Assembly (NCBI RefSeq): GCF_036588685.1
Contig: NC_086382.1
Span: forward strand, 71,858,001 to 71,922,000
Reading direction: 5' to 3'
Source of the DNA: Mytilus trossulus
Taxonomy: Eukaryota
DNA length: 64,000 nt
Below are positions 4,205-58,105 of this stretch, piece by piece. How positions within the stretch are numbered: position 1 is the first letter of the stretch; every line of letters begins with the position of its first letter. Position numbers and translations under genes: made by a program. The notes under the pieces were generated by a model. It saw only the letters and a list, made by a program, of their open reading frames with translations. It made no database searches and was not told the origin of the DNA.

Positions 4205-4480
4205 AATTCGCTACCTGTTTTTTTGGTGTATATAAGAATACCTAAGTTATAAATATAATGGAATTTGATGCGATTGTCATACAAGTGAGAGGTTAATCGA
4301 TATCAAACCAGGTTCAATCCACCAGTTTCTTCATTTGAAAATGCCAGTACCAAGTCAAGAATATATATGACAGTTGTTGTCCATTCGTTTGATGTGTTAT
4401 ATCATTTAATTTTGCCATTTCATTAGCGACTTTCCGTTTTTAATTTTCCTTGGAGTTAAGTATTTTTGTGACTAATTTTC
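4205..4480 (+). repeat. Dispersed repeat family C with decayed twister-like motif (4273-4374)
   Basis: GTGAGAGGT...CAATCCACC...GTACCAAGTC...TATGACAG; homologous to 13389-13640, 14880-15122, 29712-29985, 9241-9375 and 44975-45088. Confidence 0.7.
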
Positions 4481-5070
4481 ACCCAAAAAACAAATATTAG
4501 AAAGACTGATCTAAATCACTCCAAAAAAAAAAAGAAGACGCGTGTTAAACGTCTTGAACAAAACAATGTGTACATATAGAAACATAAAATATGCTGATGT
4601 GCATCTTTCATTCAATATATATATAGAATTTAGAATAATCCGGATTCGACAACAAATTTCGTATTACTTTTCAGTAATTTCACATCTAAATGATACATTA
4701 TTATTAATTTATAAACTCATTTATTTTTAATTTACATTTCAGATTTAAGTACACTCTCGGAGTAATCGCTTTTAGTTGAAGCAACGATCAAGTCCGTATA
4801 CAATGGATTTATGTATTTATCCATATAAGATATACTTATGAGCGAGTTCATAAATGGATCAGCTGAAATAGAAATTTAATGGATTAGATATAATGATTAT
4901 AAAGATTATTAAACCAAGGATTACGTGCTTTACGATGTGTGTTAATACTAAAACCATTTATTTGTGTCCCTTGACCTCCTAAAACCCTATCTCAATGTAT
5001 AGTTTAAGTAATCTAGTTGTGTTCGTGAAGGTAGATGTGTTAGTCGTAGAATTGTTCTATTGCAATAATA

Positions 5071-7239
5071 ATGAGTGCTGTGGTGTTCGTGGGTGATGCT
5101 TGGAAACCCTCCATTGTACAGATTGTCCCGTTTGCTGACAAAAACATTCAAAATAGTGCTAAATATAAACAATCAGCTTCCTCTGGGACAGATACTAACA
5201 ACAGGTGCTTCCCAGTATTAGCAGTTACAAGAAGTCATTCTGGAATATCACTCAATACTGTCGATACGTATTCATCACTTGATTTTAGTGATTTTCAGTC
5301 AGAAGTTTCGGACGCTGTGTCTTATTCGGGACGTTTACCAACAACGTGCGTCAGAAAAGATAAAAAGTTCCGTAAAATTGCTAGACATTCATCGATGAGG
5401 GAAAATCGCAGCGACATGATGGTTAAATTTTCAGTCCAAGATTTGAATGAACAATGTGGTGCTGTAACGACACGAAGAAATAGTATATCAAGTATTGATA
5501 CCGGAGTGTCCGTGTCAACCGTGTCAGCTTCTAGTTCCGTGTCAAATGGGCTTCCAAAGCCAACGCTTTCTGATAAAAAATTCTTGTACAAACAAAATGG
5601 ATTTAAAAAAACATTGCCGTATACCCCTGGAGAAATAGAGTTACAGAAACAGAAAGAATTGTATGCAAAGGAACAGGCTCAAAAACGGAAAAAGTACAAG
5701 TTGAATGTAAATCAGCTACCGCGAAGTAATACGCCTATCACTGACCATGATCCTGATAAACTTAACATGAAACAAGTAATACGGTTTTTACAAAAGCAGA
5801 AACCCTCTGGATCACCACGACCTGATACATATAATGTAAAATCACCCGAGCGACGGTCAACTGAAAGTCCAGTAAAGACAGCTCCAGCTAATTTTACCGT
5901 CGGTGATAAAATCAGATCGGATTTAAAAACGAGTGACTCTATGAGATCATCGCGATCAAGTGAAATAAGCATAGCAAGTCGGAGTAAACTATTGAGTCGT
6001 GATTCGGATGTGCAGTCTAAGACTTCTGCAAGTCCAAGACATAATAATCGATATCATTATTCGCATAAACATGACTATAGTTATATAGAGAATTGTTCTA
6101 CGGACAAACGGGATCGACACCGGAAGTCAGAGGGAAATGTCGATACAAAACATCGATCATCTCATGACGGTAGGGAAAACGATCGAAATAAACATTCGAA
6201 AAAACGTGAAAAAGAGTTTAAATTACACAGATTTCTTGCTTTAGCTCCCAATGGAGAAGGACAGAAAACTAATCCACTGATTATTTCAAACATTTCTCAT
6301 GTGAGGACTAATAATTGGACAACAATGAGAGAAGGATTGAAATCCGAAGGTGCTGCACAAATTCATTCCAAGTCCGAAGAAAAAACATGCATAAGACGAG
6401 TTTCCTCCGAAAGGCATAATGCCTCTCACTATAGAGCTATGAACAAAGAAAATACAAATATTAACTTTAATCAATCTGAAAAAAACGAAGTCGAACTTCC
6501 GCCAAATAAAACTACAGCAGATCAAGAAAAATATAACATAGGCAAATCCGCTACCATCATGCACCAGAGACAAATTCGTTTTCAAAAGGTTAATCCGAGA
6601 GATGATATGACTATGTCAGAATCTGACGATGGCCGAATATCTCAGACAAATTCAAGTATGATACGTCTTCCAAGCGTACATGATTATGTAGAGGAGGAAG
6701 ACGGAGAAACAACAACAACTCATGACTCATCTAAGTCAGACATTGACAGGAGAAGCCCGACGACGCAAGCGAGTGACGTTGACACAGAACAAAAGCGAGA
6801 GACAAATATTTCGCGTATTAGTTTGGATTCTTCACGAAGCTCTGTGTATAGTATTCCTATGTTATCACCTTCTCATAGGAAAGGATTTATTTCTAAAGCA
6901 AAACAAAGTATTCACGTGAGTATTCCTAAAGAGGAAGAGGAAACAAAGGAGGTCAAATTATCATTGCGACAGGAAAAGGACCTAACGGCCCAGCGAAGCT
7001 ATATGCATGATATGGTATCTAGTAGATCAGCTGATCCATTAGAAGTGATCTATAAACATACCAACGGGCATACAGTGTCGCCATCTAGTGAATCTTTTTA
7101 TGATAGAAATGTCTTCCGAATATCAACGGTATCTATGCAAAGTAGAAAATCTGAGGATTGTGGGATATGTGATGGAACAAGACTGTCGCCTGAGTCTCAT
7201 ATGACATCTAGGTCCATTGGTGCTCTATCTAGAAACTAA
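5071..7239 (+). CDS. Uncharacterised 722-aa Ser/Arg/Lys-rich, largely low-complexity protein (single coding exon)
   Basis: 2.2-kb ORF with higher GC than its flanks; upstream acceptor tttacatttcAG ending 4742 suggests a spliced 5' UTR; no domain recognised. Confidence 0.85.
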   Translation: MSAVVFVGDAWKPSIVQIVPFADKNIQNSAKYKQSASSGTDTNNRCFPVLAVTRSHSGISLNTVDTYSSLDFSDFQSEVSDAVSYSGRLPTTCVRKDKKFRKIARHSSMRENRSDMMVKFSVQDLNEQCGAVTTRRNSISSIDTGVSVSTVSASSSVSNGLPKPTLSDKKFLYKQNGFKKTLPYTPGEIELQKQKELYAKEQAQKRKKYKLNVNQLPRSNTPITDHDPDKLNMKQVIRFLQKQKPSGSPRPDTYNVKSPERRSTESPVKTAPANFTVGDKIRSDLKTSDSMRSSRSSEISIASRSKLLSRDSDVQSKTSASPRHNNRYHYSHKHDYSYIENCSTDKRDRHRKSEGNVDTKHRSSHDGRENDRNKHSKKREKEFKLHRFLALAPNGEGQKTNPLIISNISHVRTNNWTTMREGLKSEGAAQIHSKSEEKTCIRRVSSERHNASHYRAMNKENTNINFNQSEKNEVELPPNKTTADQEKYNIGKSATIMHQRQIRFQKVNPRDDMTMSESDDGRISQTNSSMIRLPSVHDYVEEEDGETTTTHDSSKSDIDRRSPTTQASDVDTEQKRETNISRISLDSSRSSVYSIPMLSPSHRKGFISKAKQSIHVSIPKEEEETKEVKLSLRQEKDLTAQRSYMHDMVSSRSADPLEVIYKHTNGHTVSPSSESFYDRNVFRISTVSMQSRKSEDCGICDGTRLSPESHMTSRSIGALSRN

Positions 7240-7508
7240 TTTGTAAAGTAGTTTTTTTTATATATTTATTAAATTGAAACTCTTGGCTAAAATCTAAACT
7301 ATTTGAAACTTAATAATGTAATGGCATACAGGCCCTATACGTACCATGCAGCAGGGTTATGAATTACAAATATAAATGGGTTCAATTAAGTCACTTGTGG
7401 TATATCCTAAATAGACCTAGTAGAATTTATTTGCTTTTTCATTTATGATCTGTCCTATATGCGCCAGGTAAGTTTCAGGCTGTACGATATCGGAACACTA
7501 ATGAATTT

Positions 7509-8548: not shown

Positions 8549-10445
8549 AAATTAAAACGTCACTTAGGATTATCCTGGCAGGAAGATTAAAACGTCGTTT
8601 TGATCTTATGATACCAGGTTCATTTTTGACTTAAAATATCGTTTAAATCTATAAAAAAATGGCTTCTCTTTAACTGTAAATGACATCTTGATTCTATTAT
8701 ATAAGAGGCATCTTTGACGCTAAAATGTCATTTAGATTAATCATTACCGACGCATCTTGCACGTAACAGACGTCATTGTCGATTTCGAAAGAGAGCAGGC
8801 TATAATGCCCATGCAAGGGAGCACTCACACCCACAAAGTTGAAAATTGTTGATATAAGTTGTAATAACTAACTTCCCAATCTACTATCAATAAATATGTT
8901 AAAATCAAATTATGTAGATCTGTTATGACATGTAAACTACGTGCACTTAAACATGATACGTACGAATATTCTGAATTGTACATGTCAATGTCAAAACACT
9001 ATAAGATCTGTATAACAAACTTTTTACAACAAAAGTTGTTGAATTTTACACTTTCAAACCGTGTCAGGGTATTTTTACATCCTAACAATAAAAAAGACAA
9101 AAAGCATCGATTGAGAGTACAGAAATTGGTGGATGAAACTTGGACGCCATTCAATATAACATTAAAGTTCAACGACATCGACATTTAAGAGACTCTCTTG
9201 GTTTTAATAAAAACTGACAGGAGATTATTTTCGCTATAAGGTATGTACCAAGTCAGAAATATGACAGTTATTACCAATTCGTTTGATGTTTTTTGAGCTT
9301 TTGTACAATTTGATTAGGGATTTTCCGTTTTGATTTTTCCTCAAAGATCAGTATTTTTGTCATTTTACCTTTTTGCTATTAGGGATCAATAAATACGCAG
9401 CCACTTCGGAAATGGACATTTTAGTCTCTCAATGTTAGTTAACGTACTTCTGCAACACCGTGTTATCCGTGGTAAACTTTTATTCCACAGGCAAAATTCA
9501 AAATTATGTTTCTTTTTAAGACCACTTATATTCCACACATTTTTATTTTGCGCTACCTATTACTTTAATTGTGAGAATGAAGAGGTTTATCAAGCTGGAG
9601 AGACTCTGACCGTTATTAAAAGACACATGTCTGTGTTTTTGCAAATTATTGTTTACCTCATATCTTGAATCTCTTTATATATATTTACCTAATAGATTTT
9701 AACCAAACAAATTAATAAGTTTAAAGCGAAATAACTCAATTTAAATAGGTTTCTATATAGCAATATTTGGAATTATTTAAAATCTAAAAATCGCTAAAGA
9801 ATTTGACTTCTTGAAAATGGTATTTAAAAAGCCACAATTGGTGACAGAACAACAACTTAAAGGGGATTGGAATGTGGATGTCCCATGTCGAAGAAAACGT
9901 ATTATATACCGACATTCATTGCATTCATTGCCAACCCTTCATCGTTTATAAGCAGCAGCTCTGCTTAAATGTTATTCAGACATGAAACAAAAAAGCTTTT
10001 GTCTTCTAACTTAGTGATGTATACTCTATATACAGGTAAAATTGAGAATGGAAATGGAGAATATGTCAAAGAGACAACAACCCGACCATAGAAAAACAAC
10101 AACAGAAGGTCATCAATAGGTCTTCAATGTAGCGAGAAATTCCCGCACCCGGAGGCGTCCTTCAGCGGACCCCTAAACAAACATATAGTAGTTAAGTGAC
10201 AATGAATAAAATTGAGAATGGAAATGGGGAATGTGTCAAAGAGACAACAACCCGACCAAAATAAAAAAAACACAACAGCAGAAGGTCACCAACAGGTCTT
10301 CAATGTAGCGAGAAATTCCCGCACCCGGAGGCGTCCTTCAGCTGGCCCCTAAACAAATATATACTAGTTCAGTGATAATGAACGCCATACTTATTTCCAA
10401 ATTGTACACAAGAAACTAAAATTTAAATAATACAAGACTAACAAA

Positions 10446-10535
10446 GGCCAGAGGCTCCTGACTTGGGACAGGCGCAAAAATGCGGCGGGGTTAAACATGT
10501 TTGTGAGATCTCAACCCTCCCCCTATACCTCTAAC
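10446..10535 (-). ncRNA. Twister ribozyme, type-P5 permutation (intact core)
   Basis: Minus strand reads UAGAGGU-AUA-GGGG-G-A-GGG-[palindromes]-U^AA-CCCC-GC-CGCA(U4)UGCG-CCUG-U-CCC-AA-GU-CAGG-A-GCCUCUG; maps position by position onto the twister core (P2, T2, P3, P4, T1, catalytic G/A). Confidence 0.82.
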
Positions 10536-10619
10536 AGTGTAGAAAAGTAAATGAACGCCATATTAAATTCCAAATTGTACACACGAAAACTAAAATTAAA
10601 ATACTACAAGAATAACAAA

Positions 10620-10710
10620 GGCCAGAGGCTCATGACTTGGGACAGGCACATAATTGCGGCGGGGTTAAACATGTTTATGAGAACTCAACCCTCTCCCTAA
10701 ACCTCTAGCC
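10620..10710 (-). ncRNA. Twister ribozyme type-P5, second tandem copy (one mismatch each in P2 and P4)
   Basis: GGCUAGAGG/CCUCUGGCC P5, GAGGG, UAACCCCGCC, CCUGUCCCAAGUCAUG. Confidence 0.7.
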
Positions 10711-11512
10711 AATGTAGAAAAGTAAACGCATAACAATCGGCACATTAAAATTCAGTTCAAGAGAAGTCCGAGTCTGATGTCAGAAGATGTAACCAAAGAA
10801 AATAAACAAAATGACAATAATACATAAATAACAACAGACGACTAGGTGTTTATTAAACTATTAATACGGAAAGTTTTCACAGGCATAATCCAAAATTATC
10901 TTTTTTTAAATATATATTCTTCAATCTTTTTGCGCTCCATTTGCTTTAACTGTGTTGTGAACTTGTCCTGAATATATATGCATGATATATTTACTATTGC
11001 ACGCGCCAAAAAATAAAAAAAAAGTGTGTTTACTAAACTGAACAACTGTAAACTGTGTTGTTTTCATTTAGTTTTCCTCAATAAAATTAGAAAACTTATT
11101 CTAGATAAATGCAAATTAATATATATATAGTGTTGATAAAGTGTTGCTATATATATATAGTAGCTTTGGAGTGGTAGGAGAATAGACTTTAAAACATGAA
11201 CAAGAGATACAAGGCAATTGCCAAATGAAACAGTTACCACACAAAATGAAACAGCCATTCACCTACAACCTCCAAAACTCCAGGCAAGCACACTCCAATG
11301 AGCCAATCAAGGCGTTAAGAAGTGAAATATTGTAGGGTTCTAAGTTAGTTCAGCTGTATAACAATGCATATATATGTATAGTTATGCATTTCAATCAAGA
11401 ACTAAACAGTCTTACTCCTTTGCCTTATTGAAAACAACAACCCGAACATAGTGCACAAAATGTTTTTTTTTTACAAATACTGGTAAACCATAAGTGCAAT
11501 ATGTTTTCACAT

Positions 11513-11970
11513 TTAATAGAACAAAAGCCATCCTGAGAATGTTGTCCTGGTATATTTATCGCTTCTGATGGTACCTTCGTGTCCTGCCCCCTGTGATCTG
11601 GTGTAAACTACATCTCCAGTTTTGAGGGTATGTATGACGAACCCAGTTGAACAGTGTTCTTCAGCATGCGTTTCGGAATCAACATAAATACTTCCGTGGA
11701 CTTTATTATCGATCACTAATTCCACTCCGATCTCACTATTGACGCTTCCGCTCGCACATACTGTCCATGTAAATGCATATGTCCCTGGAAGTGATGGTCG
11801 AAAAATACCTGTGAAGTTTTCATAACCATTTCCAACATTGCATTCAACATGGTCATAAATGAACGTTTGTCTAAGGCCAAATGACGTTGCGTCAAAGGAT
11901 GCCGATTTGTAGGCAGAGAAGGCCACACCAGGACCTTCATTCAAAAGAAATCTTCGATGTCGACTATTAC
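11513..11970 (-). CDS. C1q-domain-containing protein A, exon 2 (globular C1q domain)
   Basis: VAFSA, G+F...PGTYAFTW, GDVVY and TTFSGWLL motifs; acceptor tattgcAG at 11972-11971; phase-1 join to exon 1 gives 218 aa. Confidence 0.92.
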
Positions 11971-13388
11971 CTGCAATATATAGACCTACTAGTTACATGT
12001 ATATCTTAAATATGATAAGAAATATAACCAAAATATGAATGATGTGTGCTTCGGATACCATTGCCACCATTGCAATGGAAGCGTGGCAGGACACAAAAAA
12101 GAGGAGGAACATTACTGGTATCATAACGGTAACTTAATACCGGCGTCTTGGTGATTATTGAACAAAATGTATAATTGCACGCTGAATGCCTTACTATCCT
12201 CTATATAAATATATATTTATATACTTATACATTTGTATATAATAAGGCGAGGAATATATTTCACAAAACCAGTTTACATAATAAAAGGAGACCGAACAAG
12301 CGACTGTATGTCAATAAATATCCGCATTTTGACTATTCACAAGGAGGACCTAGGAAGCAGATGTATGTTGGAAGCCATTATATCAAAGTAAAAAATATCA
12401 TACTCATATTTATACCTCATCTTGACAAGCCTTTGAAAATTAATCAGATGACTATGCTCTGGATAGTGATGTCACAATGGTTTCGCAAACTTGTCTAAAT
12501 TTACATGTTTAACCCGCCACATTTTATATTTGTCTCTCTCAAGTCTAAACTTAATGTAATGCATTGGTTTTTACATGTGATTTGTTTTAATTTGCCACGT
12601 TGGAACCTTTCACAGGTTGTTATACAAAATGTGGTTTTATGATTGGTATAGCTGTATGGTTAACCAGCTAGAAGCCCTTATGTCATTTTTGTCTTTGGTA
12701 GAACATTGTCTAATTGGCAATCATACATTGCGAATAAGATAATAGTTTATCAAAACCACTCGTTAGAGTTGAGATTTGGTTAATATCTTAATATTAATGA
12801 TAATTTTACATCGTAAGGATATGTTGATAGTTACTACACTTTGAATTTAATGAAATTTAAATCCGACCGAATGAGAAAACTTTTAGAAATATAGAAATAC
12901 CGAGATTAGACTGTGTGATGTCGTTTGAAATTCTGGTCCATAGGTTGCATTATCATTACTTATTTCAGTTTTTGAAGTTAGAGCGGCTCTGACCTTTATT
13001 AAAAGACATATGTTTGTGTTGTTGCAACTGCCTTATGGACTTCATTGAATCTCTTTTTATAAATATGTAACTAAATGATTTTTTAACAAACAAGTTATAA
13101 TTTCAAAGCGAAATAGCTCAATGCAAATTCGAAAAATCGCACAAAAACTTAATTTCTTGGCTATGATATAGTAAGATCTATAATTGGTGAAAATGGATTG
13201 AGTTGTGGATGTGCCATGTTTGCGGAAACATATTACACAATGTACGTATATACCACCCCTCTCCCAAAATAAACAGGTCCACTGTGTTTCGTTGTCAACC
13301 CTTCATCGTTGGTAAGCAGCAGCTCTGCTTTAATGTTATTCAGACACAAACCCAAATGTGGCATTTATCATATAAACTTATATAATTA

Positions 13389-13640
13389 TGAAAAAGTAAA
13401 ATCACAGAAATACTGAACTTAGAAGAAAATCAATTCGGAAAGTCCATAATCACATGGCAGAATCAAATAACAAAACGCATCAAAAACGAATGGACAAGAA
13501 CTGTCATATTCCTGACTTGGTACAGGAATTTTCAAATGTAGAAAATGGTGGATTAAACCTGGTTCTATAGCGCTAACCCTCTCACTTTAATGACAGTCTC
13601 ATCAAATTCCGTTATATATACATTGATTCGTTAAATAAAC
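13389..13640 (-). repeat. Repeat family C with twister-like motif (13500-13597), in the C1q-A intron
   Basis: ACUGUCAU/AUGACAGU P5, UAA-UCC-AC, CCUG-UACC-AA-GU-CAGG; absent from the paralogous segment near 10000-10020. Confidence 0.78.
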
Positions 13641-14103
13641 TGATATACTCTACGTACATGTGTTTATTAAACTATTAAGGAAATTTTGAGGTATGAGATT
13701 ACTTGACAACGTTTATTTCTGAGCATAAATCAAAGTTCAAAGGAAGCGCATTTTCGCCCTCAAAAATATTTGTAAAAGTTTTGACTCGTATTTGCGTCAA
13801 GGTTCAAGCCATGATTGATGTTACATGACCTTTTATTAAATTTTACAAAAAAATTAACAAATAGATACAGGCTGATGGAAGATTGATACAATTTTGAGTA
13901 TATCCATATGTAGCTACTTTATCCTACTAGTGTGCTTTACGGTAAATTGGCTTTGAATATTCGTTTTTTTAAACATCTACAAATTAATACATTATTACAT
14001 TATTTCATTATTTTACGACTTCATCAGTTTGTTTCAAGATAATCGAAGGAAGTACGATGTTTATCTAAAATGACACAATATATTACTCTAGTAATATTTT
14101 TAC

Positions 14104-14302
14104 CTTTAACTATTTGTCGTAATTCGGCTGCTTCTTTCTCAATTACAGACATCCTTTCAACCTCCATTTCAAGTTTGGCTATTTTCTTTTCATAAGTTTC
14201 CATTCGGTCCAAAAGATTTTCCAAATTAATATCATTTCTGATTGCAATAATACCATGGAAGGACAAGCACAGAATAATTCTATACCATGCCATTTTAAAC
14301 AT
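14104..14302 (-). CDS. C1q-domain-containing protein A, exon 1 (signal peptide + coiled coil)
   Basis: Hydrophobic N-terminus, heptad-like E/K/L/M stretch, donor AAG|GTAAAA at 14103; paralogous to 21730-21913. Confidence 0.88.
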
Positions 14303-15262
14303 CGAGAGATAAGAATATGTGTCAATGTTCTGTTCTTATCAAAATATAGTCCTACTTATTAATAATATGTAATAATTCAGATTTTCAAAAACACTATCTG
14401 CGTATTAACATTCATATGAGTTGACAGAAATAAATGAACAAACCCATTTTGATATTCTTATTATACCCAGAAGCATGTCAAAGAACAGAAGAACACAATA
14501 TGTTCAACAGTGTTGGCTTTCCAACAGAAATTGTATAATACTTTTTTAAATAATTTGCATGTGTTTGGTTTAAATTTTCAAATTTTCCCCTTACATCTTG
14601 CAAAGAAAAGCATTGTACAGGATTAATCTCGGATCATATTTTCATAGTTCTGTAAAGATATGTTGAGGTGGGTCGAGACGACGAACATTTTAACATTTTT
14701 CAAATTTTCAGTTTGAGTTGTTTAAATTGATTATCGTCAAACAAAGCGGCATAACTCAGGTATAAATTGATAAAAACTGTATGACTATGTGTGACTACTT
14801 GTTTGTAAGAAAAAGAAAAAAATAAGTATATATTAAAGGCCTCATGATAACCTGCATTGGTTGTCTTTCTTTAAGGCAATTTGTGTGTCTTTGTTTCATT
14901 AGTGATTAAGATTATACTACAATGTTGCCATAGGTAACCCATTTGTTTACGAAGTTTTCCTTTCAAATCTGTTTGTTTTGCTTACAGATTAATTGTTGCG
15001 TTTTTAATGGTATTGAATGCGACTGTCATAGACGTGAGAGGCATAGCTAGCTATAAAACCAGATTGAATCCAATATTTTCGACATAAAGAAATGCATGTA
15101 CCAAGTCAGAAATAATACAGTTAACATGTTCTATTTGAAAAAGAGATTTCTATTTTTTTTAATTTTTTTTTGTGGTTTCAAATTTGTGTACCAATGTGAA
15201 TAAAAAATGTCAACAACTTCATTAGATGATGGAAATGCACTAACATGATTTTATCAAATTTT

Positions 15263-15562
15263 GGATAATCTCCCCACTCCATGAAAGGAATTATTCTCCT
15301 TGAATAAAAAATAAAGTACCAAAGGGTAAATATACCCACATACACATATAAAACTCACGTTAGATTATCCCCACGATAAGATGATTATTTGAAAAAACAA
15401 AAGCTTTAAAATATTGTTGACAATTAATAGGGGAAACTTCCCAACAATCCCATCATATTCAAGTTCGATGTCGTTGACTATCAATTGAGGAAATTTCCCC
15501 ATAATCTTGAAAATAGATAGTATGGATAGTATTGACATAAGATAGTATTGAGAAGATTCCCC
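15263..15562 (-). promoter_or_regulatory. Cluster of NF-kB/Rel-like motifs upstream of C1q-A
   Basis: GGGGAAACTTCCC at 15430, GGAAATTTCCCC at 15489, GAAGATTCCCC at 15552, weaker matches at 15263 and 15362. Confidence 0.4.
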
Positions 15563-15683
15563 ATCATCTCATTAAGTTCAAATTGACCGGTAACAACATA
15601 ATTGTATGTACTAAAAACTGTCGTCACAAGTCGTTAATATTTAGACAGTCTTCGGACAGTTAAAAGAAACAAATATTGATATA

Positions 15684-16450
15684 CTAGTCAACAAAAGAAA
15701 CGATACACGACTTTGAAATAAAATTTATCCAAAACTATTAGATATAAAACAAAATAAGATACACTATTTTAAAAAGCTTTCATTTGCAATGTATGCACAT
15801 GTGATAATGAAAATCAAAACTTGTCGGAAAGTATCTAAATTCTATATAAACGAACATAGGGTGCAAATTAGTTTTGCGGAAAGTTGAATAAAAAATCGAC
15901 ACACATTTTTCTAAGTACTGCATACAATTTCAAATTTGTTTGAAAATATTCAATATGCTAATCAAGTTATGTTCTTGTTGTCAATAATTGGTTGAAGTAT
16001 TGTTTTTTTTTTCAAATTTTTGGGAAAAAAATTGTTTTTAAAATTTCAAAAAATGCAAAACAATTTTTTTTATTTTCGTCTCAAATCAATGCTTTACATA
16101 TTAAAACAACACACAGTAAATTTGGAGCCTTCGGATAAGTTTTAAGTTTGTTACCGCTTTTTAATTATCACTTTACACATACTGTCTATGGTAAATTAGT
16201 TAATAACGTATACATTTTAACGATTTCTCGTGGGGACGAACTTTGCTGAACAAATAAACGAAGAAACTGTATAATTTTTAAAAACAGATTGATGGCAAAT
16301 ATTGTCTTTTCCTTCAAATTAGAGACGGATATAAACGGATTTATATTTACATAATGATTAAGTATTACTACCTTCAATATTGGTCCTATAAACGGAAAAC
16401 TTTATCTTTAATTAAAAAAAAAGTCTTGTATCGTTTCTTTTGTTGACTAG
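15684..16450. mobile_element. Non-autonomous Tc1/mariner-type TIR element (MITE)
   Basis: ~31-bp TIRs CTAGTCAACAAAAGAAACGATAC... at both ends, flanked by TA on each side. Confidence 0.85.
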
Positions 16451-16509
16451 TATATATTGCCTATTAATAATAATATCACATCCTTATAACTAATCAAAGT
16501 TAAGGCTAG

Positions 16510-18504: not shown

Positions 18505-19010
18505 ATAAAGGCAACAGTAGTATACCGCTGTTCAAACTCATAAATCTATGGACAAAAAAAATAAAATCGGGGTAACAAACTAAAACCGAGGGAAAGGCAT
18601 AAAATATAAGAGAACAACGGCACAACAATAAAATGTAACACACACAGAAACGGACAAAGAATCAGACAAAATCCCACGAGAATAACAAATATAACATCAA
18701 AACAAAAATACTTAATTTGGGATAGACAAGTACCGTGACATGTCTTATCGCAATATTAATTTACACTAAAAAATAAGAGAAAACAAACGACGCAACGTTA
18801 AAATGTAACACGCACAGAAACGAACAATAATATAATAATAGCCATATTCCTGACTTGGTACAGGACATTTTTAAAGAACAAAATGGTGGGCTGAACCTGG
18901 TTTTGTGGCATGCCAAACCACGCACTTTAATGGCAATGTTAAATATAACATTGAAATGACAACATAATATCACAGGACTACAATACAAATAAATAGGAGA
19001 ACGTATTAAG
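18505..19010 (-). repeat. Repeat family D with decayed twister-like motif (18841-18935)
   Basis: GCCAU/AUGGC P5, GGU..UACC T1, CCUG/CAGG P4; two core substitutions. Confidence 0.75.
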
Positions 19011-19079: not shown

Positions 19080-19735
19080 CTTATAGGGTCTTTGCATCGG
19101 AAGTAAACACATTTATTTAAAAAACAGTGGTTGGCATGACACGGGTTATTTTCTTTTCATATATTGTATGATTGTATGATACTAAACCCCTAACGAGAGG
19201 GATTTTGCCTGATATTCATATGATGAAGAAATAATCTATCCATTAGTTTAATTGAGGTCTGGAGCTGGTATGTCAGTTAACTGCTAGTATAGTCTGTTGT
19301 TATTATGTATTATTGTCATTTTATTTATTTTCTTTTGTTACATCTTCTGATATCGGACTCGAATTTCTCTTGAACCGAATTTTAATGTGCGTATTGATAT
19401 GCGTTTACTTTTCTACTTTGGGTAGAGGTATATGGGAGGGTTGAGATCTCATAAACATGTTTAACCCGGCCATAATTTTGCGCCTGTCCCAAGTCAAGAG
19501 CCTCTGGCCTTTTTGAGTCTTATATTTTATTTGCTTGTGTATAATTCGGAGTTAAGTATGACGTCCATTATCACTATACTAGTATACATATTTTTAAGGG
19601 GCCAGCTGAAGGACGCCTAAGGTTACGGGGGTTTCTCGCTACATTCAATACCCATTGGTGGCCGACGGCTGTTGTCTGCTCTATGGTCGGGTTGTTATCG
19701 TTATGTCACATTCCCCATTTCCTTTCTCAATTTTA
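19080..19735 (+). repeat. Repeat family A, long copy with twister-like motif (19420-19509)
   Basis: Homologous to 10206-10845 and 57480-58105; GAGGG..UUUAACCC..CCUGUCCCAAGUC. Confidence 0.8.
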
Positions 19736-21926: not shown

Positions 21927-22113
21927 CTCGGGGAGATAAGAATGTGTGTCATGATTCTGTCTTATCATCTTTAAATCCAGATTACAGTAAGGGCAATAGC
22001 CCTAGCCCTGACTGCAAATCTTTAACAAAACGGAAATAACAATAGCTCTGACTGTAAATCTGGATTTAAAGATGATGTGACAGAATCATAACACACATTC
22101 CTATCTCCCCGAG
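21927..22113. repeat. Inverted duplication (~70-bp arms) immediately upstream of the C1q-B start codon
   Basis: 21927-21997 is the reverse complement of 22042-22113 with few mismatches. Confidence 0.85.
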
Positions 22114-29711: not shown

Positions 29712-29985
29712 AGAGAAATGATAAATATACCCAACTCCGAGAATAATTAAAAAGCAGACAGTCCGTAATCAAATGTCAATATCAAAAACTCAAAAACACC
29801 AAACGAATAAATAACGACTGTGATATTCCTGACTTGGTAAAAGCATTTTGTAGAAACTGGTGGATTCAGCCTGTTTTTTAACCTAAATAAACATCTAACT
29901 TGTATTACAGTCGCATACAATTCTATTATATTGACAACAATGTGTGAACAAAACAAACAAACATTATAGGTAAAAAAAATAAGTA
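29712..29985 (-). repeat. Repeat family C, decayed
   Basis: Homology to 13389-13640 including ACCAAGUCAGG. Confidence 0.7.
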
Positions 29986-33837: not shown

Positions 33838-34166
33838 TAAAAAAAAAAGATGTGGTATGATTGTCACTGAGACAACTATCCACAACAGACCAAAATGACA
33901 CAAACATTAATAATTATAGGTCACCGTACGGCCTTCAACAATGAGCAAAGTCCACACCGCATATAGTCAGCTATATAAGGCCCCGATAAGACAATGTAAA
34001 ACAATTCAAACTAGAAAACTAACGGCCTTATTTTGTTAAAAAATGAACGAAAAACAAATATGTAACACATAAACAAACGACGACCACTGAATTACAGGCA
34101 CCTGACTTGGGACAGGCACATATATAAATAATGTGGCGGGGTTAAACATGTTAGCGTGATCCCAAC
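33838..34166 (-). repeat. Repeat family B (3' end of the PLE at 55183-56395), truncated inside the twister motif
   Basis: Reverse complement of 56075-56395; 3' half of the twister at 34083-34166. Confidence 0.8.
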
Positions 34167-36802
34167 ATTAAGACTTTTTTGCTGGTACAATGTAAATGTA
34201 TGGTTATTTATTATTATGTTGAAACTATCAGTGTTTTTCAAAAAATAGTACAACAAATACAATTTGACCTGGAATTCAAATGTATCAAGTTGACAGCGGT
34301 GAGCTACCTGCTAGTTATCTGAAAATATTTCATTAAACACGCCAAGGAAAAGGATAGTATACAAAAGTGCCTCCCATTAGGTTGTCAATGACGGTGATAG
34401 CAAGTTTTGTCATAAGGTGTGTGTCTGTTTTTGTAGCCCGGTTTGAATGTGTAGCAAGTTTGATATACATTGGATTCCTCATCCATCATTGATCACTAGA
34501 TCACTTCAAGAACCCGCTTGTAAAATTCTTGTTTAAGGGACTTACGTTTGTGTGTGAGATATAGACAATAAATAAGAAAACCACATATGGTCAGAATGTA
34601 GACGGTAATTCCAATACCCTGTGTGGAAAATTACAACGCTTTCTGGAAGACATAGAACGTCATATTGATGAACTGAAATGTCCATATAACATTATCATAT
34701 ATATAAAATAAAAATTTGAGAATGAAAATACATGTATGTATTTATCGACAAGCTTACACAATTTGAAAAGGCTTTAAAAAGTATTATCATTTTTGCAATT
34801 ACAAATAATATTTTTATCACAACACATTCCTTATAAGTATGGACAGAAATCTTACACTTACTTTTTAAAATATCAGATTTTGTTATCGATGAACAATGTC
34901 TTTAATTGTATTAAAGTAGGACATGTTCAGATTCTATTTAACTGTCAAGGTTATAAAATAATTATGAAGGGATGTAGTATTTAAGATAGACAATCTTTTG
35001 TTACAAGAACATGACATTGCTAAAATGAAGGTTTATAATTTTGTATTTTGTAACGATAATAATGATGTTCGTAATTCTGGACCTCAGATCTTTAAAACGA
35101 TGTGTCCGGTATGATTATAGAATCAAACTTCTTCAAATACTAGTAATTTTGATATTAGAAAATGAACAATTTCCTTTGCGTACCTTATATTTAACGTATT
35201 TTAGTATTATGTAATCAAATAATTGATTATACAGCATGTTTGCTCTTTTCTAATTTGACTTTGTTGAGTGTTTAATTGAATGGTCCAACACCAAACGTCA
35301 AACTACAAAAAAACAAATTACCAAGGGAATAGATAAATCACAATTTATTCATTATAGACACACAAACCAGGCTTTGAAGTGCTGAGTAAATAAAGATTTT
35401 AAGCAGCAAGTAATTACAAAAAATTTCTTATTCTTTATAGCTATGTAAAAACTGAGATAGAAATTAGTACGTTTTCTTATCACATAAGTGAGCACATAGT
35501 ATGATACATTATTGTCAACGAAAGGAGATCTTGTTACTCATGTTGTCACTTTGCAATGCAACTATTTCACAACTCATTTTTTTTTCTTCTTAAGTCTAAC
35601 AATTATCAAACTGCATTTAGATCTTTTAAAAAAAATAATACATCGGTAAACTGACAAATGCAGAGAAATATATTTTATAAGTTATAATTGCACAGGAAAT
35701 AAGAATTAAAAAAAATTCAAACACTTTTCGTTACGTGAATTTCGGTTTAAGAACTGTCTAAATATGGTTGCAAATTTTATCTATTCCTTGTACTATACTG
35801 GACCAGGTTGACTTTATATTTGTTATAACAAGCCCATTCTATATATTTTTGATACCCCCTCACTGACAGGTAATTAATTTTGTGAAGCATCTGACGTTGA
35901 TTTATGTATGGAAAAGAGGACATAATTATGAAAATCTAGTTTACCCCATGTTGGTTTACTGGATAACCTCGGTAAATATCACTTTAAAGAAATTAGTATT
36001 GAATTTGAAGCATGAATTCGTCGCTTGTTATAAAAACGTGTGGTGTGATGGGCAAATAATTACGAAATATTAAAAACGTTTGTTTTTTTATTTATTGCGC
36101 CTGATAAACCCATTATGAATTGAAATGTATTTATTTAATTGATGTTTAACTCAAGTTGCATACATCTTAGTCATCAGTAGGACTACAACTTATCTCATTG
36201 GTAGGTTTTGCACAGTGCATGGATCGGGATGTTGGAAATGGACATTTTACAATACAACAGCCTACTTATGGATCCCTCGTAAATTTTAGTAATGGGTCTT
36301 TACCGTGTATATAGCGTGGTACTATCCGTATCTTATATAAAAACCCTCGCATATGCCAAATAGCTACACGAATGACCCGTTCTTAGAATCGTTTGTTTTT
36401 ACCGCCGGTTAAATGGCACGCATATTTGAGTATATTGGGACTGACAACACCATTTTTATATGTCATGTTAGCATACTTTTATATAAAATGCATGACATTT
36501 GTTTTTATAAATCACGTTAAGAAAAAATAATTGCAGTTAGCCAAAATCAGAAAACAGAACTGTTGAGCAATCAACGTGTTTATCTGTGACTGACGACTTT
36601 TTGTAAGGAATATATTTGATATAGATATATATGATGTTAAATTTAGACCATTAAAATTGTCATAAAAAGTCATTATTAATTATGTTACCACCCACCTTTG
36701 ACAAAGAGCCCTTGATCTCTTACTTCGCATAATGAAAGGAAAATTTCAATTTTCACAATTGTTGCCCAAAGGTAAAGTAAGCAAACTGTTGCAGAAATTC
36801 TA

Positions 36803-45630: not shown

Positions 45631-46086
45631 AACTGAATTGTATTTGAAGCTTTAAGGACGTCCATCGGTAGTTTTACTGTCGCAAATTTAGTTTACCTGG
45701 CGACGCGGAGTTATCTCTATTCTAATGCAAATCAAGTTTATAATTAAATTTCAATCATGATTTCAGTGTAAAATGTTCATTAAAGAAAATTCCGCGAAAA
45801 GATGTCATGTTCTTTGGTCTCTACACTAGGTAACGTCATAGGTATGCTTCCGGCGTTACACATAAACACCGGGCGTTTTCTGGCTTCTGTGCCGCTTCAA
45901 AATGTAATAACATTTGGTAAAAAGAAGATTTTTAGGCGTAACAAGTGAGTTTTTTGTTTATTATTGTAGAAATAACATGTCAAAACATTCCGAAATTCAA
46001 AATGTCGGCTTCCGTAGTTACAGACAAGGAGCTTGTCGTTATCCAATCAGAACAATTGTTACAAAATAATTGTATTAGAATAGACA
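45631..46086 (+). mobile_element. Non-autonomous hairpin/TIR element, copy 2
   Basis: Homologous to 40250-40670; inverted repeat tctctattctaatgcaa (45714) / ttgtattagaatagaca (ends 46086). Confidence 0.65.
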
Positions 46087-47093
46087 AAATTATTTGATGC
46101 TTTGGTGGCTCCTATTTTGACCTATTCCTCGGAAATATGGGGGTTTGAAAATAAAAATAATACTGAAAAGTTACATCTTCAGTTTTGTAAGCGCACTTTG
46201 GGTGTACGATCATCTACGCCAAATTTTATGGTATATGGGGAACTTGGAAGATTTCCGGTTGAACTGCAGATCAAGTTAAAAATGGTATGTTTTTGGCACA
46301 AGCTAGCAACAAATGATAAAACACTATCGGGTAAACTTTATAAGTTACTTTGGTACATGCATGAGCATGAAGGTTGTAATTTTAAGTGGTTTAACTATGT
46401 AAAATCTGTGTTTAATGATTGTGGCTTTTGTGAACTATATAATTTTCCGGAGCAAGTTGATTATAATTATATTAAAATTAATGTAAGGCAGCGTCTCCAG
46501 GACCAGTTTATTCAAAAATGGTTCTCAGATATAAACAATTCATCAAGGGAGGAATTTTATCTACACTTTAAAGAAGAGTTTTGCTTGGAACCATATCTGT
46601 TAAAATTAAGGCGGGGTCATAGGGTAAACATATGTAAATTAAGGGTATGTAATACAAAGTTTCCCATCGAAACAGGAAGATGGAGAAATGTACCACGAAA
46701 TGAGAGGATTTGTCCACTTTGTAAAGCTGGTCTTGGAGATGTATACCACTATATATGTAAATGTACCAACTATGAAGTTAAGGATTTAAGGGGGAAGTTC
46801 ATACCTCCATATTATTTAAAATATCCAAATGAAAAAAAAGTACTTGGCATGCTTAAATATAGTAATAGTAATGTGCTGTCTAAGCTGTCAATTTTTATTC
46901 AAAAGGTAGAAAAGATGCTTGTCTAATTTAAAACTGTAATAAACACAAACTTATTTTTGAAGATGTATAATTTAAAAATGTATTATGTTTGTATGATGAA
47001 CTATGTTGTAATTAATATTGTGTATATAAATATGCTCCTGTTACGCAGTCTTCTGCGGCTGAGTTTTCTCTAATAAACTAAACTAAACTAAAC
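46087..47093 (+). mobile_element. 5'-truncated non-LTR retrotransposon (ORF2 C-terminus, RTE-X/L2-like), antisense in intron
   Basis: PIL.Y.SEIWG, VYGELGR.P and IETGRW..R.ERIC..C..GD.YH...C zinc-knuckle motifs; 3' hairpin, AATAAA and (CTAAA)n tail; clade assignment uncertain. Confidence 0.88.
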
Positions 47094-48292: not shown

Positions 48293-49104
48293 AATAGTAG
48301 TTATTAAAGAAACCAGGATTATGATTTGATGTCCCAGACGCGCTTTTCGTCTAAACAAGACTCATCAGTGACGCTCAGATCAAAAAAGTTATAACCACTT
48401 CCACGTGTATTTTTTGTCTATCTGATGAGTTAACCCTTCTTCAACAGATTTTTATAGTTCGTTCTTATGTTGTACTGTTATACCACTGTCCCAGGTTAGG
48501 GGAGGGTTTTAACCACGCCACATTATTTATGTATGTGCCTGTCCCAAGTTAGGAGTCTGTAACTCAGTGGTTGTCGTTTGTTTATGTGTTACATATTTGT
48601 TTTTACATAAATAAGGCCGTTAGTTTTCTCGTTCGAATTGTTTTACATTGTCTTATCGAAGCCTTTTATAGCAGACTATGTGGTATGGGCTTTGCTCATT
48701 GCTGAAGGCCGTACGGTGACCGATAGTTGTTAATGTTTGTGTCTTTTTGGTCTTTTTGTCTCATTGACAATCATACCACATCTTCTTTTTTATATAACGC
48801 CAAAGAAGTACAAAGTTGTACAGCATTGAGGACCCACAATTCCAAATAATGTTGTGCCCAATAGTGCTTAGATAATCTTATTTCTTGGATTAAAAAAACC
48901 TTAGTTTTTCGAAATATTCAAAGTTTGTAAACAGGAAATTTATAAAAAAAAAATGACATACAATTGATATTCATGTCAACACCAAAGTGCTGACTACGGG
49001 ACTGTTGATACCCTCGGGGACGAAACGTCCACCACCAGTGGCTTCGAAACAGTGGTATAAATAGTTATTAAAGGTACAAGGATTATAACTTAATACGCTA
49101 GACG
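48293..49104 (-). mobile_element. Hammerhead retrozyme-like repeat (family H) interrupted by a family B insertion
   Basis: Terminal redundancy at 48296 and 49060; hammerhead at 48331-48375 (stem III mismatch). Confidence 0.8.
48395..48797 (+). repeat. Repeat family B nested in family H; twister-like motif at 48482-48571 lacking the palindromes
   Basis: Homologous to 55962-56395; TATAA on both sides. Confidence 0.8.
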
Positions 49105-52241: not shown

Positions 52242-52285
52242 GCGTTACTGATGAGTCTTTTGTAGACGAAACGCGCGTCTGGCAT
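52242..52285 (+). ncRNA. Minimal type-I hammerhead ribozyme (within family H copy 52050-52326)
   Basis: gcguua-CUGAUGA-gucu(uuugu)agac-GAAA-cgcgc-GUC^uggcau; core intact, stem I weakened. Confidence 0.8.
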
Positions 52286-52695: not shown

Positions 52696-52739
52696 ACGCC
52701 AGACGCGCGTTTCGTCTTCATAAGACTCATCAGTGACAC
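52696..52739 (-). ncRNA. Minimal type-I hammerhead ribozyme (within family H copy 52660-52780)
   Basis: guguca-CUGAUGA-gucuu(aug)aagac-GAAA-cgcgc-GUC^uggcgu; all three stems can form; palindromic ACGCGCGU stem III. Confidence 0.87.
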
Positions 52740-54825: not shown

Positions 54826-54972
54826 TATACTAAGGTTTTTCTACATCTGGAATGGATTACCTTAGCTGTATTTGGCAAAACTTGTGGTACTCAATGCTTG
54901 TCAACATCGTATTTTATTTAGCCTTTTTAACCTTTTTTGATTGATGAATTTTAATCCTGATATATATGATTC
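54826..54972 (+). repeat. Family H relic with the hammerhead deleted
   Basis: Matches 16693-16822, then jumps to the 3' terminal motif. Confidence 0.6.
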
Positions 54973-55182
54973 CCTCATTTGTAAATATTAATACAATTTC
55001 TGGATTTATGACTACAATGACTATGCAAATACGGACTGTCAAACAGAAGCCAATGAAACATACAAAAGCAATTCACCAATAATTTGTTTTGAAGTTTATA
55101 TTTTTATTCAGCTCTCGGACAAGCAATTAGTATTGCACCATAACTTCAAACTTCACTGGGCCCAGCCTGCAAACTATTCTAA

Positions 55183-56395
55183 AACGGGAAACTACACACT
55201 GAATTTTACGACAATAGAGACGATTTTTCGTTCCCTATTGTTAATTTTCCATTTTTAGAGGGTGATGTTTCTTTGGCACCATCTTACGTTGTTTATATTT
55301 CACAACTTGTTCGCTATGCCCGTGTCTGTCGTGACGGTTTTGATTTTAACGAACGCAACCTATGTATTACTGATAAATTATTAAACCAGGGATATCATTA
55401 CCATAAATTACTCTAAACCTTTACTACCTTTTTTCATAGATATAAAGAGTTGGTTTTGAAGTTTTGTTGTACCTGTAGAAAACTTATTTCTAACGGGATA
55501 TCATATCCTCATTTTCACGGCAATGTTGTTAACAGTGCCCGGAAATTTAGAAATGATTCATGTAAACTTGTCGCTCCTTTAAATAAACTAATTCTAAAAG
55601 GTTACCTATTCAACACTGTAATAAGGTCATTGAATATTGTTTTATTGGTATAAATATTGATTTTGTAATCCGTAGATTAAAAGCTAACTAAATATTACTG
55701 GTGTGTTATATACATATACATATTCTTGGATCCACAATCTGTCGATACCTGTAACTTGGCATTGCACAAGGTCATGTCTTTCTCTGGCTGTTTATGACGT
55801 CTTTACACTAAATCCATTGGATGTTGGAGGTGTACAGATTGATTGTTTAGTCTTAGATGCATGATTTTTTTATAAGTTGTTAGAGGCTTTGAACTAGCTG
55901 TCAGATTACTGCGAGTACTCTCAGATCTGTTAATGATGTTTTTTGCGTCGGGAAGTAACCGGCCACGTCCACTTTAATTTGTTGTCCATCTGATGAGGTA
56001 AGCCTTTTTTAACTGATTTTTATAGTTCGTTCTTATGTTGTACTGTTATACCACTGTCCCAGGTTAGGAGGAGGGTTGGGATCCCGCTAACATGTGTAAC
56101 ACCGCCACATTATTGATGTATGTGCCTGTCCCAAGTCAGGAGCCTGTAATTCAGTGGTTGTCGTTTGTTTATGTGTTGCATGTTTGTTTTTCGTTCTTTT
56201 TTTTTACATAGATAAGGTCGTTAGTTTTCTCGTTTTACATTGTCTTATCGGAGCCTTTTATAGATGACTATGCGGTATGGGCTTTGCTCATTGTTGAAGG
56301 CCGTACGGTGACCTATAGTTGATAATGTTTGTGTCATTTTGCTTTTTTGTGGATAGTTGTCTCATTGGCACTCATACCACATCTTCTGTTTTATA
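55183..56395 (+). mobile_element. 5'-truncated Penelope-like retroelement, family B (RT thumb/C-terminus + ~700-nt 3' region containing a twister motif)
   Basis: GKLHTEFYDNRDDFSFPIVNFPFL...YISQLVRYARVC...KLLNQGY; one in-frame stop; the 3' region matches the short family B repeats. Confidence 0.85.
56050..56158 (+). ncRNA. Twister ribozyme type-P5 in the PLE 3' region
   Basis: ACCACUG/CAGUGGU plus AGGU/GCCU P5; GGAG-G-A-GGG; U^AA-CACC-GC; CACAU/AUGUG P3; CCUG-UCCC-AA-GU-CAGG. Confidence 0.75.
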
Positions 56396-57044
56396 TTCTG
56401 CTTACTGTATTGCTACCAATCCCTATCGTCTTGCAATTTTATAGGTACAGCTTCTTATTACAATGTTTTGCTGACCCATTTTAACTAACAGCCTACCAGA
56501 AGAGATATCGACTCCAATGCTGAAATAACATAAACGGTTCGAACTTTACTTGACAAGATACGCATTTCGATATGTAATATTATTCGTAGGTTTGTATGAT
56601 TTGTATTCGAGACAAAACTATTTGAATATCGTATCCTTTTTTTCTCATAAAAAACTAATAAACTCAAATTTTCAAATCAAAACGGACGAAAGCTTATAAA
56701 AGCAAACAAAAACCAGAATCAGATACTAAACAGGACAAATAATCATCGGATTATAACATGGAAATTTCAATTAAAAATATCTGTTCTTACCAGTACAATT
56801 ATACAAAAATTTATTGATGATGAATTTATTTCTTGGTAATGCTTAGACTAATAATCAAAAATTGTGATTGAAACATTCAAACCGTAAGGCGATTATATCT
56901 GAAATGACGTACATTATGATTATATTTTTCAGGTTTGTTTGTAATTAACTGCTTTCGTATGTCACATACAAGGCGATGAAATCAAATATAATCATACCAT
57001 TACTTAATTTAAATATAAGCAATAACATGACATTCGTATCTAGT

Positions 57045-57152
57045 AATAGTTATCAAAGGTACTAGGATTATAATGCAATGCATCAGACGCGCTTTTCGAC
57101 TGCACGAGACTCATTAGTGACGCTCAGACCACAAAAGTTATAAAGCCAAACC
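57045..57152 (-). repeat. Family H fragment with inactivated hammerhead (CUAAUGA)
   Basis: Paralogous to 48293-48390, sharing the GAAAagcgc variant. Confidence 0.7.
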
Positions 57153-57479
57153 CTTTTTGCTTAGGTTATGAATTAAAACGTATTTGTCAGTTTGTACCTG
57201 ACATAATGATTCGAATGCACTTTATCTGATTAATAGCGATACTTCGGAGCTTCTTTGTTTGTTAGATATGACGTTAAATAAATCATTTGTTAATAGATAC
57301 CAACCCGCTGACATCGTAATTTGTATGGAAATATTCCATACAAAGAACAAACATGTCGTCATTAACATTAAAAGCTTACAAAACCTTCATACATACTTAG
57401 GAATATTGTTACGGTAGAGAGGCAAGTCAATAAAGATGGCATAATATTGAATTATAATGGATTCACACATAGATACTTC

Positions 57480-58105
57480 TGGCATAAGAAATAACCACTT
57501 CTTAACCAGTTGTTGGCATGATGCAGGTTATATTATTCACATATATATTATGATGGTAAGATACATACGCCATAAAAGAACGTATAGTGCTTGAACTTAA
57601 TATGATGACAATGTTATCTTTTAACCAGTTGAGTTGAAGTCTGGAGCTCGCATGTCAATAAGTTCCAGCAGTTTGTTGTTAATTTAAAAAAAAACAGTTT
57701 CATCTGTTGCCTAATCTGATATTGGACTCAGACTTCATATGACATTTATGAACTGATTTTAGCTGTTCATAGTTCTGTGTGTTTGTTTGTTCTTCATTGT
57801 TTAAATGTATATGGGACGATTGAGATCAAATTAAACATGAGTAACGTCGTTGCATTTGTGTGTCTGTCCCAAGTCAGGAGCCCCTGGCTTTTTATAGTCT
57901 TTTTTAGTTCATTTATTTGTTCATGAGTTTATTGTGACGTCCATTTTACCTGAACCAGTACACATTTGTGTTGTGAGGGAAACCGGACCCGCCTCCGAAT
58001 GCGGAATCTGCTCGCTATGTTGAAGACCAATTGATGGTCTTGAATTGTTTTCTGCTCGTTGGTCGGCTGTTGTTCATTTTACACATTGGCAATTTAATTC
58101 AAAAT
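57480..58105 (+). repeat. Repeat family A, old decayed copy
   Basis: Colinear with 19080-19735; retains CUGUCCCAAGUCAGGAGCC. Confidence 0.7.

Follow-up and report, generated by a model that had tools for sequence, protein, structure and literature searches.

A 64-kb stretch of the 1.3-Gb Mytilus trossulus assembly (G000:C10:71858001-71922000; hereafter the window, always at its full length) carries short repeats which, judged by sequence, are mostly 5′-truncated 3′ tails of Penelope-like retroelements, a few of them still joined to a decayed reverse-transcriptase gene. We consider it probable, at roughly 0.6, that these tails belong to Naiad-type elements and encode a type-P5 twister-class fold, which is conserved by selection and would process the element RNA. 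The analysis supports a selected fold of the twister class, in a permutation and a host element that are both new and with P1 lacking; the ribozyme is a predicted one. In the proposed scheme, the sense strand of each tail would encode a circularly permuted twister-class fold clamped by helix P5, with P2, P3 and P4 radiating from one junction. Loop L4 (GUMCCAAGU) would pair with the L1 strand (GAGGK) to form contact T1 and with the L2 dinucleotide to form T2, and the predicted scissile bond would lie 5′ of an invariant AA. Such a fold may cut or process the element RNA, in the way proposed for hammerheads of other Penelope-like elements; cleavage would probably be only inefficient or conditional, because two self-complementary stretches, which favour RNA-RNA pairing, stand where P1 would be. 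The twister class itself is reportedly that of Roth et al. 2014.

Copies were located through the shared loop motif and each site was then read. A sequence-only reading of the window had described four different repeat families, A to D, keeping one twister fold with compensatory changes. Every coordinate that it listed was found to carry a copy, on the strand stated, and one C-type copy was added (9238-9272(+)). The families do have distinct flanks, but they are not unrelated, being diverged 3′ tails of one Penelope-like superfamily. Family C comprises C1 and C2; a fifth family, E, was identified in this analysis, and a lineage F was found in another organism.

On the GUMCCAAGU strand, complete copies read 5′ to 3′ as follows: a P5 arm, 2-4 mostly-A residues of which the last A is invariant, a 4-nucleotide (nt) P2 strand, GAGGK, about 21 nt (the P1 region), NAA and the P2 complement. 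The second P2 strand is followed by GC or AC (L2), a P3 hairpin of variable sequence, P4 (CCU, the loop GUMCCAAGUC, AGG), 1-3 nt and the 3′ arm of P5. By its sequence the layout is that of a circularly permuted (type-P5) twister, and it agrees segment by segment with the published Schistosoma twisters (PMC8501958). The scissile N-A step and the second conserved A are present as UAA in A, B, E and C1 and as CAA in C2, D and F, with the AA invariant across family consensuses. Directly 3′ of P2, A, B and C1 have GAGGG as the L1 3′ strand, where C2, D and F have GAGGU and E has GAAGG; L4 matches each change, C1 excepted. P4 is CCU/AGG and its loop is GUCCCAAGU, to be compared with the twister consensus loop GUCCCAAGC. 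P2 has 4 bp in A, B and E; C, D and F have only 3 bp there plus a bulged base, the 5′ strand being one base shorter and the bulge lying in the 3′ strand. For C and D, P2 might instead have paired in another register (UC-C-AC with GUGA, no T2), but this was ruled out by D and F copies with GCGG, in which that pairing is impossible. B and E have minimum-free-energy folds identical to the nested twister architecture.

Rfam searches of short stretches returned Twister-P5 (RF02684) as top family for A (23.1 bits, E-value 0.0036, over 10457-10523 of the module at 10443-10535(-)) and for B (21.4 bits, E-value 0.0089). Both alignments match the P2 3′ strand, GAGGG, UAA, the P2 5′ strand, GC, P4 and GUCCCAAG. 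The mussel modules share with RF02684 the element order, the loops GAGGG, UAA, GC and GUCCCAAG, P2, P4 and a 3-bp T1; they differ in having two self-complementary stretches in place of the P1 hairpin and an L4 that ends in U, and in C, D and E T1 and P2 have changed beyond recognition by the model. A genome-wide RF02684 search scored 79 of 26,711 candidates. Two further candidates were rejected: a rebuilt P2 (ACGU/ACGU) in sampled locus L014 proved to be a single copy in the whole genome, not a lineage, and a tRNA-derived head of the short interspersed element type was dropped since no tRNA was found.

We then examined abundance with a strict core pattern (GAGGKT, gap, HAAYCC, gap, GTMCCAAGT) and its reversal as control. 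The pattern gave 10,567 + 10,394 exact matches genome-wide (about 21,000), the control 0 + 0; a second pattern admitting E gave 11,343 genome matches, about one quarter of them E-type, with 0 in its control. Some 13 copies were present in 200 kb of arbitrarily chosen genome, which implies on the order of 10^4-10^5 copies genome-wide, decayed ones included, so that the very large count predicted from the window alone was borne out. DNA searches gave at least 2,754 first-look candidates for family A (scored matches 91-92% identical), at least 2,703 for C1 (94-98%) and at least 4,631 for E (about 84%). At one locus (G000:C7:57053801-57066734) five C1 copies stand at an exact 3,168-nt spacing, which places the element within a larger tandem repeat.

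To compare families, consensuses were built from about 330 kb of local sequence and the listed pattern matches, and the helices were parsed by hand and by script. T1 joins L4 positions 3-5 to L1 positions 5-3. In A and B the L1 side is GGG and the L4 side CCC (GAGGG with GUCCC), while C2 and D carry GGU and ACC (GAGGU with GUACC), a double change at one pair. Family E carries AGG and CCU, a double change at the pair lying across the invariant middle pair from that of C2 and D. Two different T1 pairs have thus each undergone an independent double change, C-G to A-U (C2, D, F) and C-G to U-A (E). Among the first 100 strict-pattern matches, 54 were GGG/CCC, 28 GGU/ACC, 18 GGG/ACC and none GGU/CCC; with the pattern admitting E, GUCCU went with GAAGG in 26/26 of the matches listed, and one mixed row paired GAAGG with GUCCC. 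The T1 assignment of the sequence-only reading, CCC/GGG in A and B and ACC/GGU in C and D, therefore stands for A, B, C2 and D, but C1 has GGG opposite ACC, with a G.A mismatch. That mismatch had been remarked in the copy at 13500; it is present there, but it is no private change, since the young C1 subfamily as a whole has it in its consensus.

The other contacts behaved less uniformly. T2 has a C-G pair that is constant and a first pair of the G.U, A-U or U.U type (the last in one E copy); the contrast of GC and AC in L2 had been read correctly, but the change from G.U to A-U is one-sided and not compensatory. By consensus the first P2 pair is U-A in C and E and C-G in the other lineages (A, B, D and F), in line with the two states, C-G and U-A, of the sequence-only reading; D copies are often C.C or C-G. 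P3 varies in sequence and pairs in every family, as claimed (A, CGCA/UGCG; B, CACAU/AUGUG; C, CAUUUUC/GAAAAUG; D, CACUUUUA/UAAAAGUG; E, UGCAA/UUGCA). Similarly, the four P5 helices pair as written in that reading and are unrelated in sequence among families: GGCUAGAGG/CCUCUGGCC in A, an outer ACCACUG/CAGUGGU with an inner CAGGUU/AGCCUG in B, ACUGUCAU/AUGACAGU in C and GCCAU/AUGGC in D; E has UCAG/CUGA. A combined shuffle test on P5 gave P = 2e-5, with single families weak. In a 24-copy alignment 81% of cells were paired, against 76% in shuffles (0/500 reached 81%) and 32-50% with partners slid, and the T1 pair at columns 22/85 was U-A in 10 copies and G-C in 9. RNAalifold on the MAFFT alignment returned no consensus structure, because P3 and P5 differ in register between families. 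Fold and compensatory changes persisted at the level of family consensuses, genome-wide and in the second organism. The comparison shows selection on master copies to have kept the fold while the helices were rebuilt.

These data also bear on whether the fold is a chance look-alike hitchhiking on a successful transposon, with covariation as an artefact of a few related sequences. The copies do share descent, so that counts are non-independent, related sequences can exceed shuffle controls, and a rough estimate of our own, reasoned and not computed, puts chance matches to the full core at about 0.1 per genome. Yet the flanks, the P1 region, P3 and P5 have diverged past alignment while the loops stayed fixed. 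Both loop changes that separate A and B from E hit one predicted T1 pair and are complementary, as are those of C2 and D at another pair, and lineage F of the other organism retains the core alone. We judge a chance origin very improbable.

Lineage F came from a scan of metagenome contigs whose matches were mostly chance ones in microbial contigs; several of these chance matches came from human-gut metagenomes, none was taken for human DNA, and all were left aside. It comprises six loci, and the four names listed are JYMV01 contigs. F has GAGGU with GUACC, a P3 of CAUUUC/GAAAUG and a new 9-bp P5 (CCGUAAUGA/UCAUUACGG) in which one copy shows an internal switch from A-U to G-C. This P5 and a covarying P1 hairpin close the core of F, and the mini-hairpin before the cut is AAUC-U-GAUU in F and AACC-A-GGUU in Mytilus trossulus. 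Searched against the Mytilus trossulus genome, F matched only over its core of about 75 nt, at 78-84% identity, and its flanks did not match; this indicates that the core is conserved across hosts and the P5 clamp rebuilt. On one JYMV01 contig, a 5′-truncated F copy (L048:2720-2780 (+)) adjoins sequence encoding the GPKY motif of a Penelope-like protein in the same orientation.

We next consider the host element. C1 copies have a common fixed 3′ end and differing 5′ ends, and the window and the sampled sequence show the same for copies of B, D and E. The ribozyme strand thus undergoes 5′ truncation, which makes it the strand of the element RNA. Two C1 loci on different contigs have 1.2 kb in common, extending into a decayed reverse-transcriptase frame. 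In the window, positions 55183-55494(+) carry the decayed thumb, or C-terminal region, of a Penelope-like reverse transcriptase (to the relative P0161, BLASTP E-value 6e-17 and tblastn E-value 2e-20), and the B module at 56050-56163 stands about 560 nt downstream of it on the same strand, within the 3′ untranslated region (UTR) of that element. A thumb remnant also lies upstream, on the same strand, of C1 at these two loci and of a C2 copy. A search with the remnant, made with no profile, found more than 10,000 relatives, the longer of which have weak RVT_1 matches upstream of the matched region. P0161 carries GPKY and PADKA motifs and its frame ends just past the thumb; frames stop about 35 residues beyond the thumb, so there is no C-terminal endonuclease. 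Naiads are described as having DKA for DKG, a GxKF/Y motif and an N-terminal endonuclease, and as dominant in bivalve genomes (Craig et al. 2021, PMC8557442). They are further reported to be heavily 5′-truncated, to form partial tandems and to be without canonical hammerheads (PMC8557442). Partial tandems were seen here at sampled locus L025 and at window positions 10443-10709, and an Rfam search found no hammerhead in the A-E tails. The putative Naiad assignment is well supported, not complete.

Hammerhead-like sequences do occur elsewhere in the window. Two type-I hammerhead matches in inverted orientation, at 52242-52285(+) and 52696-52739(-), fall just below the Rfam threshold (31.7 and 31.0 bits against 34). 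About 1 kb upstream of the minus-strand one (52739-52696) is the remnant of a different Penelope-like reverse transcriptase (54636-53835(-)). A hammerhead half core, CUGAUGAG, is present at 55985-56000 and 48455-48470 (+), about 60 nt upstream of B modules; 'half cores' of the hammerhead are mentioned for Naiad 3′ UTRs (Craig et al. 2021, PMC8557442).

A number of observations weigh against a processing twister carried by Naiads, and several come from Rfam. At gathering threshold no match was obtained for the whole window. The 21-23 bits of A and B on short stretches stay below the threshold of 37.6, much of this shortfall arising because the 20-position P1 hairpin is skipped in the alignments. 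C1 gave a meaningless 12.7-bit match in the wrong permutation, and D and E gave no twister match on short stretches. As C, D and E go unrecognised by Rfam, their membership rests on homology to A and B and on the conservation pattern. Within the fold, the last L4 base is U in every family where the consensus has C, and owing to this terminal U the first T2 pair is of the G.U, A-U or U.U type; P2 of C and D is only 3 bp with a bulge, and folding z-scores are weak (-0.1 to -2.3). The T1 mismatch belongs to the consensus of C1, to which 18 of the first 100 strict matches belong; so young and very successful a subfamily indicates that an intact T1 is unnecessary for spreading. The canonical P1 helix is absent, and no helix joins the L1 strands. 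On the side of the element, the copies available yielded no GIY-YIG domain at the N-terminus, the hallmark of Naiads.

Two tests of cleavage, both indirect and insensitive, point the same way. For the first, four raw-read RNA-seq runs under the same species label were mapped on 10500-16499 at 90% likeness. With a mean depth over A and C1 of about 130-430 per orientation, no pile-up of molecule ends near the predicted scissile bonds 10667|10666 or 13555|13554 reached one fifth of depth in any of the four runs. Efficient cleavage of most transcripts is ruled out; cleavage of a minority is compatible with these reads. Read numbers at 10500-10899 and 13300-13699 were about equal in both mate orientations, which suggests passive transcription of two strands or unstranded libraries. 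The premise of the second test was that, as in Schistosoma, reverse transcription of cut RNA should frequently yield genomic copies whose first base is the A following the cut. Family A gave 13 breakpoints at the predicted cut and 12 at a control 7 nt upstream, hence no excess.

The place of P1 is taken by self-complementary sequence. In every lineage the interval between GAGGK and the cut contains UU and then a perfect self-complementary stretch of 8-10 nt (for example at 10495-10515(-) and 18895-18915(-)). This stretch is UGAGAUCUCA in A, GGGAUCCC in B, UAGCGCUA in C1, UAGCUAGCUA in C2, UGGCAUGCCA in D and UGGGCCCA, UGGAUCCA or UGGUACCA in E, whose subfamily palindromes differ only in their centre (GC, AU or UA). 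Central dinucleotides are always self-complementary, which is not required of a hairpin. The corresponding stretch of lineage F, GGCGCU, relies on G.U pairs for its self-complementarity and has it as RNA only. Across the cut lies a further short palindrome or mini-hairpin: AAACAUGUUU in A, AAACGUUU in E and AACC-A-GGUU in C and D. On cofolding, symmetric dimers were 7-16 kcal/mol more stable than two monomers. By analogy, the palindromes may resemble the weakened, dimer-prone hammerheads of other Penelope-like elements. We would tentatively go further and suggest, as a possibility somewhat short of even odds, that Naiad-type elements use a permuted twister which is active only when two RNAs or tandem units pair through their palindromes.

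Inverted repeats of this kind could also be read at the level of DNA, with a DNA transposon or Helitron-type carrier whose inverted repeats or protein sites would be the P5 arms and the palindromes. Inverted repeats (P5) do bracket the module, and perfect palindromes of 8-10 nt do lie inside it. However, 5′ truncation is variable and the 3′ end fixed, a reverse-transcriptase gene stands upstream on the same strand, and the arms vary among families while the interior is conserved, the opposite of miniature inverted-repeat transposable elements. Moreover, there are G.U pairs in P5 and in the self-complementary GGCGCU of F, which as DNA is no palindrome. Such a DNA-level origin is scarcely credible.

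More serious is the view that the tail is a structured but non-catalytic 3′-UTR element, serving as a signal for reverse-transcriptase recognition or for dimerisation or packaging, and that it is a twister look-alike or a descendant that has lost cleavage. The lack of a cleavage signature in RNA reads and 5′-truncation points is what it would predict, as are the replacement of P1 by palindromes with an in silico dimerisation gain of -7 to -16 kcal/mol, the success of C1 despite its T1 mismatch and the Rfam scores below threshold. On the other hand, the invariant positions are those conserved in twisters (N^AA, GAGG and the CC, AAG and GU of L4), and a pure protein-binding fold need not retain the AA of the scissile site in seven lineages. 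Also, P1 has been reported to be dispensable for twister activity (PMC11662667). We regard a non-catalytic tail as rather unlikely, and prefer a twister-class fold that would process the element RNA.

To our knowledge twisters are widespread, and a biological role has been documented only for the RTE elements of Schistosoma. The Perere-3 (RTE) twisters of Schistosoma mansoni (PMC8501958) are likewise metazoan, borne by a retroelement and present in thousands of copies, and in the GGAG-GAGGG-UUGG stretch the window family B copy is nearly identical to the Schistosoma twister. The Schistosoma twisters are of type P1 and lie at the 5′ end of the element; they cleave off the upstream transcript, and the cut directly adjoins target-site duplications (PMC8501958). 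In contrast, the Mytilus trossulus fold is of type P5 and lies in a Penelope-like 3′ UTR, and truncation points are not enriched at the predicted cut.

A second comparison is with the minimal hammerheads of Penelope-like pseudo-long terminal repeats (pseudo-LTRs) and with animal retrozymes (PMC8557442, PMC7229834, bioRxiv 10.64898/2026.07.22.740005), which share the element class and the 3′ or pseudo-LTR position. In both, the helix beside the cut is weakened and palindromes could pair two RNAs. The ribozyme class differs, and canonical hammerheads are reported to be absent from Naiads; in the same window, the hammerhead-bearing element (52696-52739) has no twister. With the Naiad clade (Craig et al. 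2021, PMC8557442) the elements share DKA, GxKF/Y, a frame that ends past the thumb, strong 5′ truncation, partial tandems and the tens of thousands of copies known from bivalves, whereas PMC8557442 describes no ribozyme beyond partial hammerhead cores and the N-terminal endonuclease was not seen in the present sample. Full-text literature searches, with most subscription journals outside their coverage, found no paper that ties the twister to Penelope-like elements, Naiads or mussels. Bivalves are among the taxa with type-P1 twister candidates (PMC11662667), and truncated twisters were noted at RTE 5′ ends (PMC7761336).

A twister-class fold in Penelope-like 3′ tails would tie the twister to a second order of retroelements. 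If the interpretation is right, the twister would be the second ribozyme class recruited by the Penelope-like order and, at roughly 10^4-10^5 copies, the tails would form the largest natural twister reservoir known; they would also offer an answer to the success of Naiads without hammerheads. What the evidence shows is a conserved fold; a working ribozyme is a prediction. The families make up a set of natural mutants, with compensated and uncompensated T1 and P2 states and no P1, and they lend themselves to testing what share of the fold is required. In Mytilus trossulus, standard Rfam thresholds overlook tens of thousands of structured copies.

The individual window copies are in various states of preservation. 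Family A is represented by modules at 10443-10535(-), given here from P5 to P5 and with its predicted scissile bond between 10493 and 10492, and at 10617-10709(-), with its predicted bond at 10667|10666, across which RNA reads were mapped. Of the two units of a 174-nt internal duplication, the former is the downstream one. We considered this tandem (10446/10620) as a retrozyme-like array and rejected it, the duplication being private to one element and typical A copies single-unit. A third A module (19420-19512(+)) has a 1-nt deletion in the P2 3′ strand, and a degenerate A-like one (57799-57892(+)) has its L1 3′ strand mutated to GACGA. Besides the module at 56050-56163(+) with its two-part P5, family B includes a module whose P1 region is deleted (48482-48576(+)), a copy 5′-truncated within the P1 region (34081-34168(-)) and a 5′-truncated B-type relic with decayed L4 (12503-12545(+)). 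A and B have in common a second conserved 3′ module downstream of the twister, which reads GYUGAAGG..., is followed by a U-rich end with CAUUUCC or CACAUCUUC and reaches the 3′ end of the element (56240-56390 (+), the 10380-10440 region (-), sampled loci L030 and L007).

Family C2 has a module with compensated T1 (GAGGU with GUACC) at 4273-4373(+) and a decayed one at 15022-15124(+). The C1 module at 13497-13597(-) has GAGGG with GUACC, hence the G.A mismatch, and a predicted scissile bond at 13555|13554; the element around it has its 3′ end at 13391 and is 5′-truncated at about 13643. A further C module is decayed (29816-29912(-)), and in the added copy at 9238-9272(+), which is 5′-truncated, only P4/L4 and the P5 3′ strand remain. 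Family D is present as a module at 18835-18937(-), with GUGGU and GUACC and a GCCAU/AUGGC P5, a copy 5′-truncated in P3 (23220-23262(-)) and a copy that ends inside L4 (32744-32825(+)).

Other features of the window lie apart from these tails. An open reading frame of 722 codons at 5071-7239(+), 700 nt downstream of a C2 twister copy, is rich in serine and lysine and probably represents a host exon encoding a disordered protein; as a partner gene of the repeats its 722-aa product was rejected, being serine-rich, without a Pfam match and outside any element. At 46084-46926(+) lies the C-terminal part of a reverse transcriptase of the long interspersed element type with a CCHC-like knuckle, unrelated to the Penelope-like remnants. 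Finally, a long near-perfect hairpin at 21931-22109(-) reaches 56 bits with the plant MIR9563 model, whose threshold is 90; it probably represents an inverted-repeat element rather than a microRNA gene.

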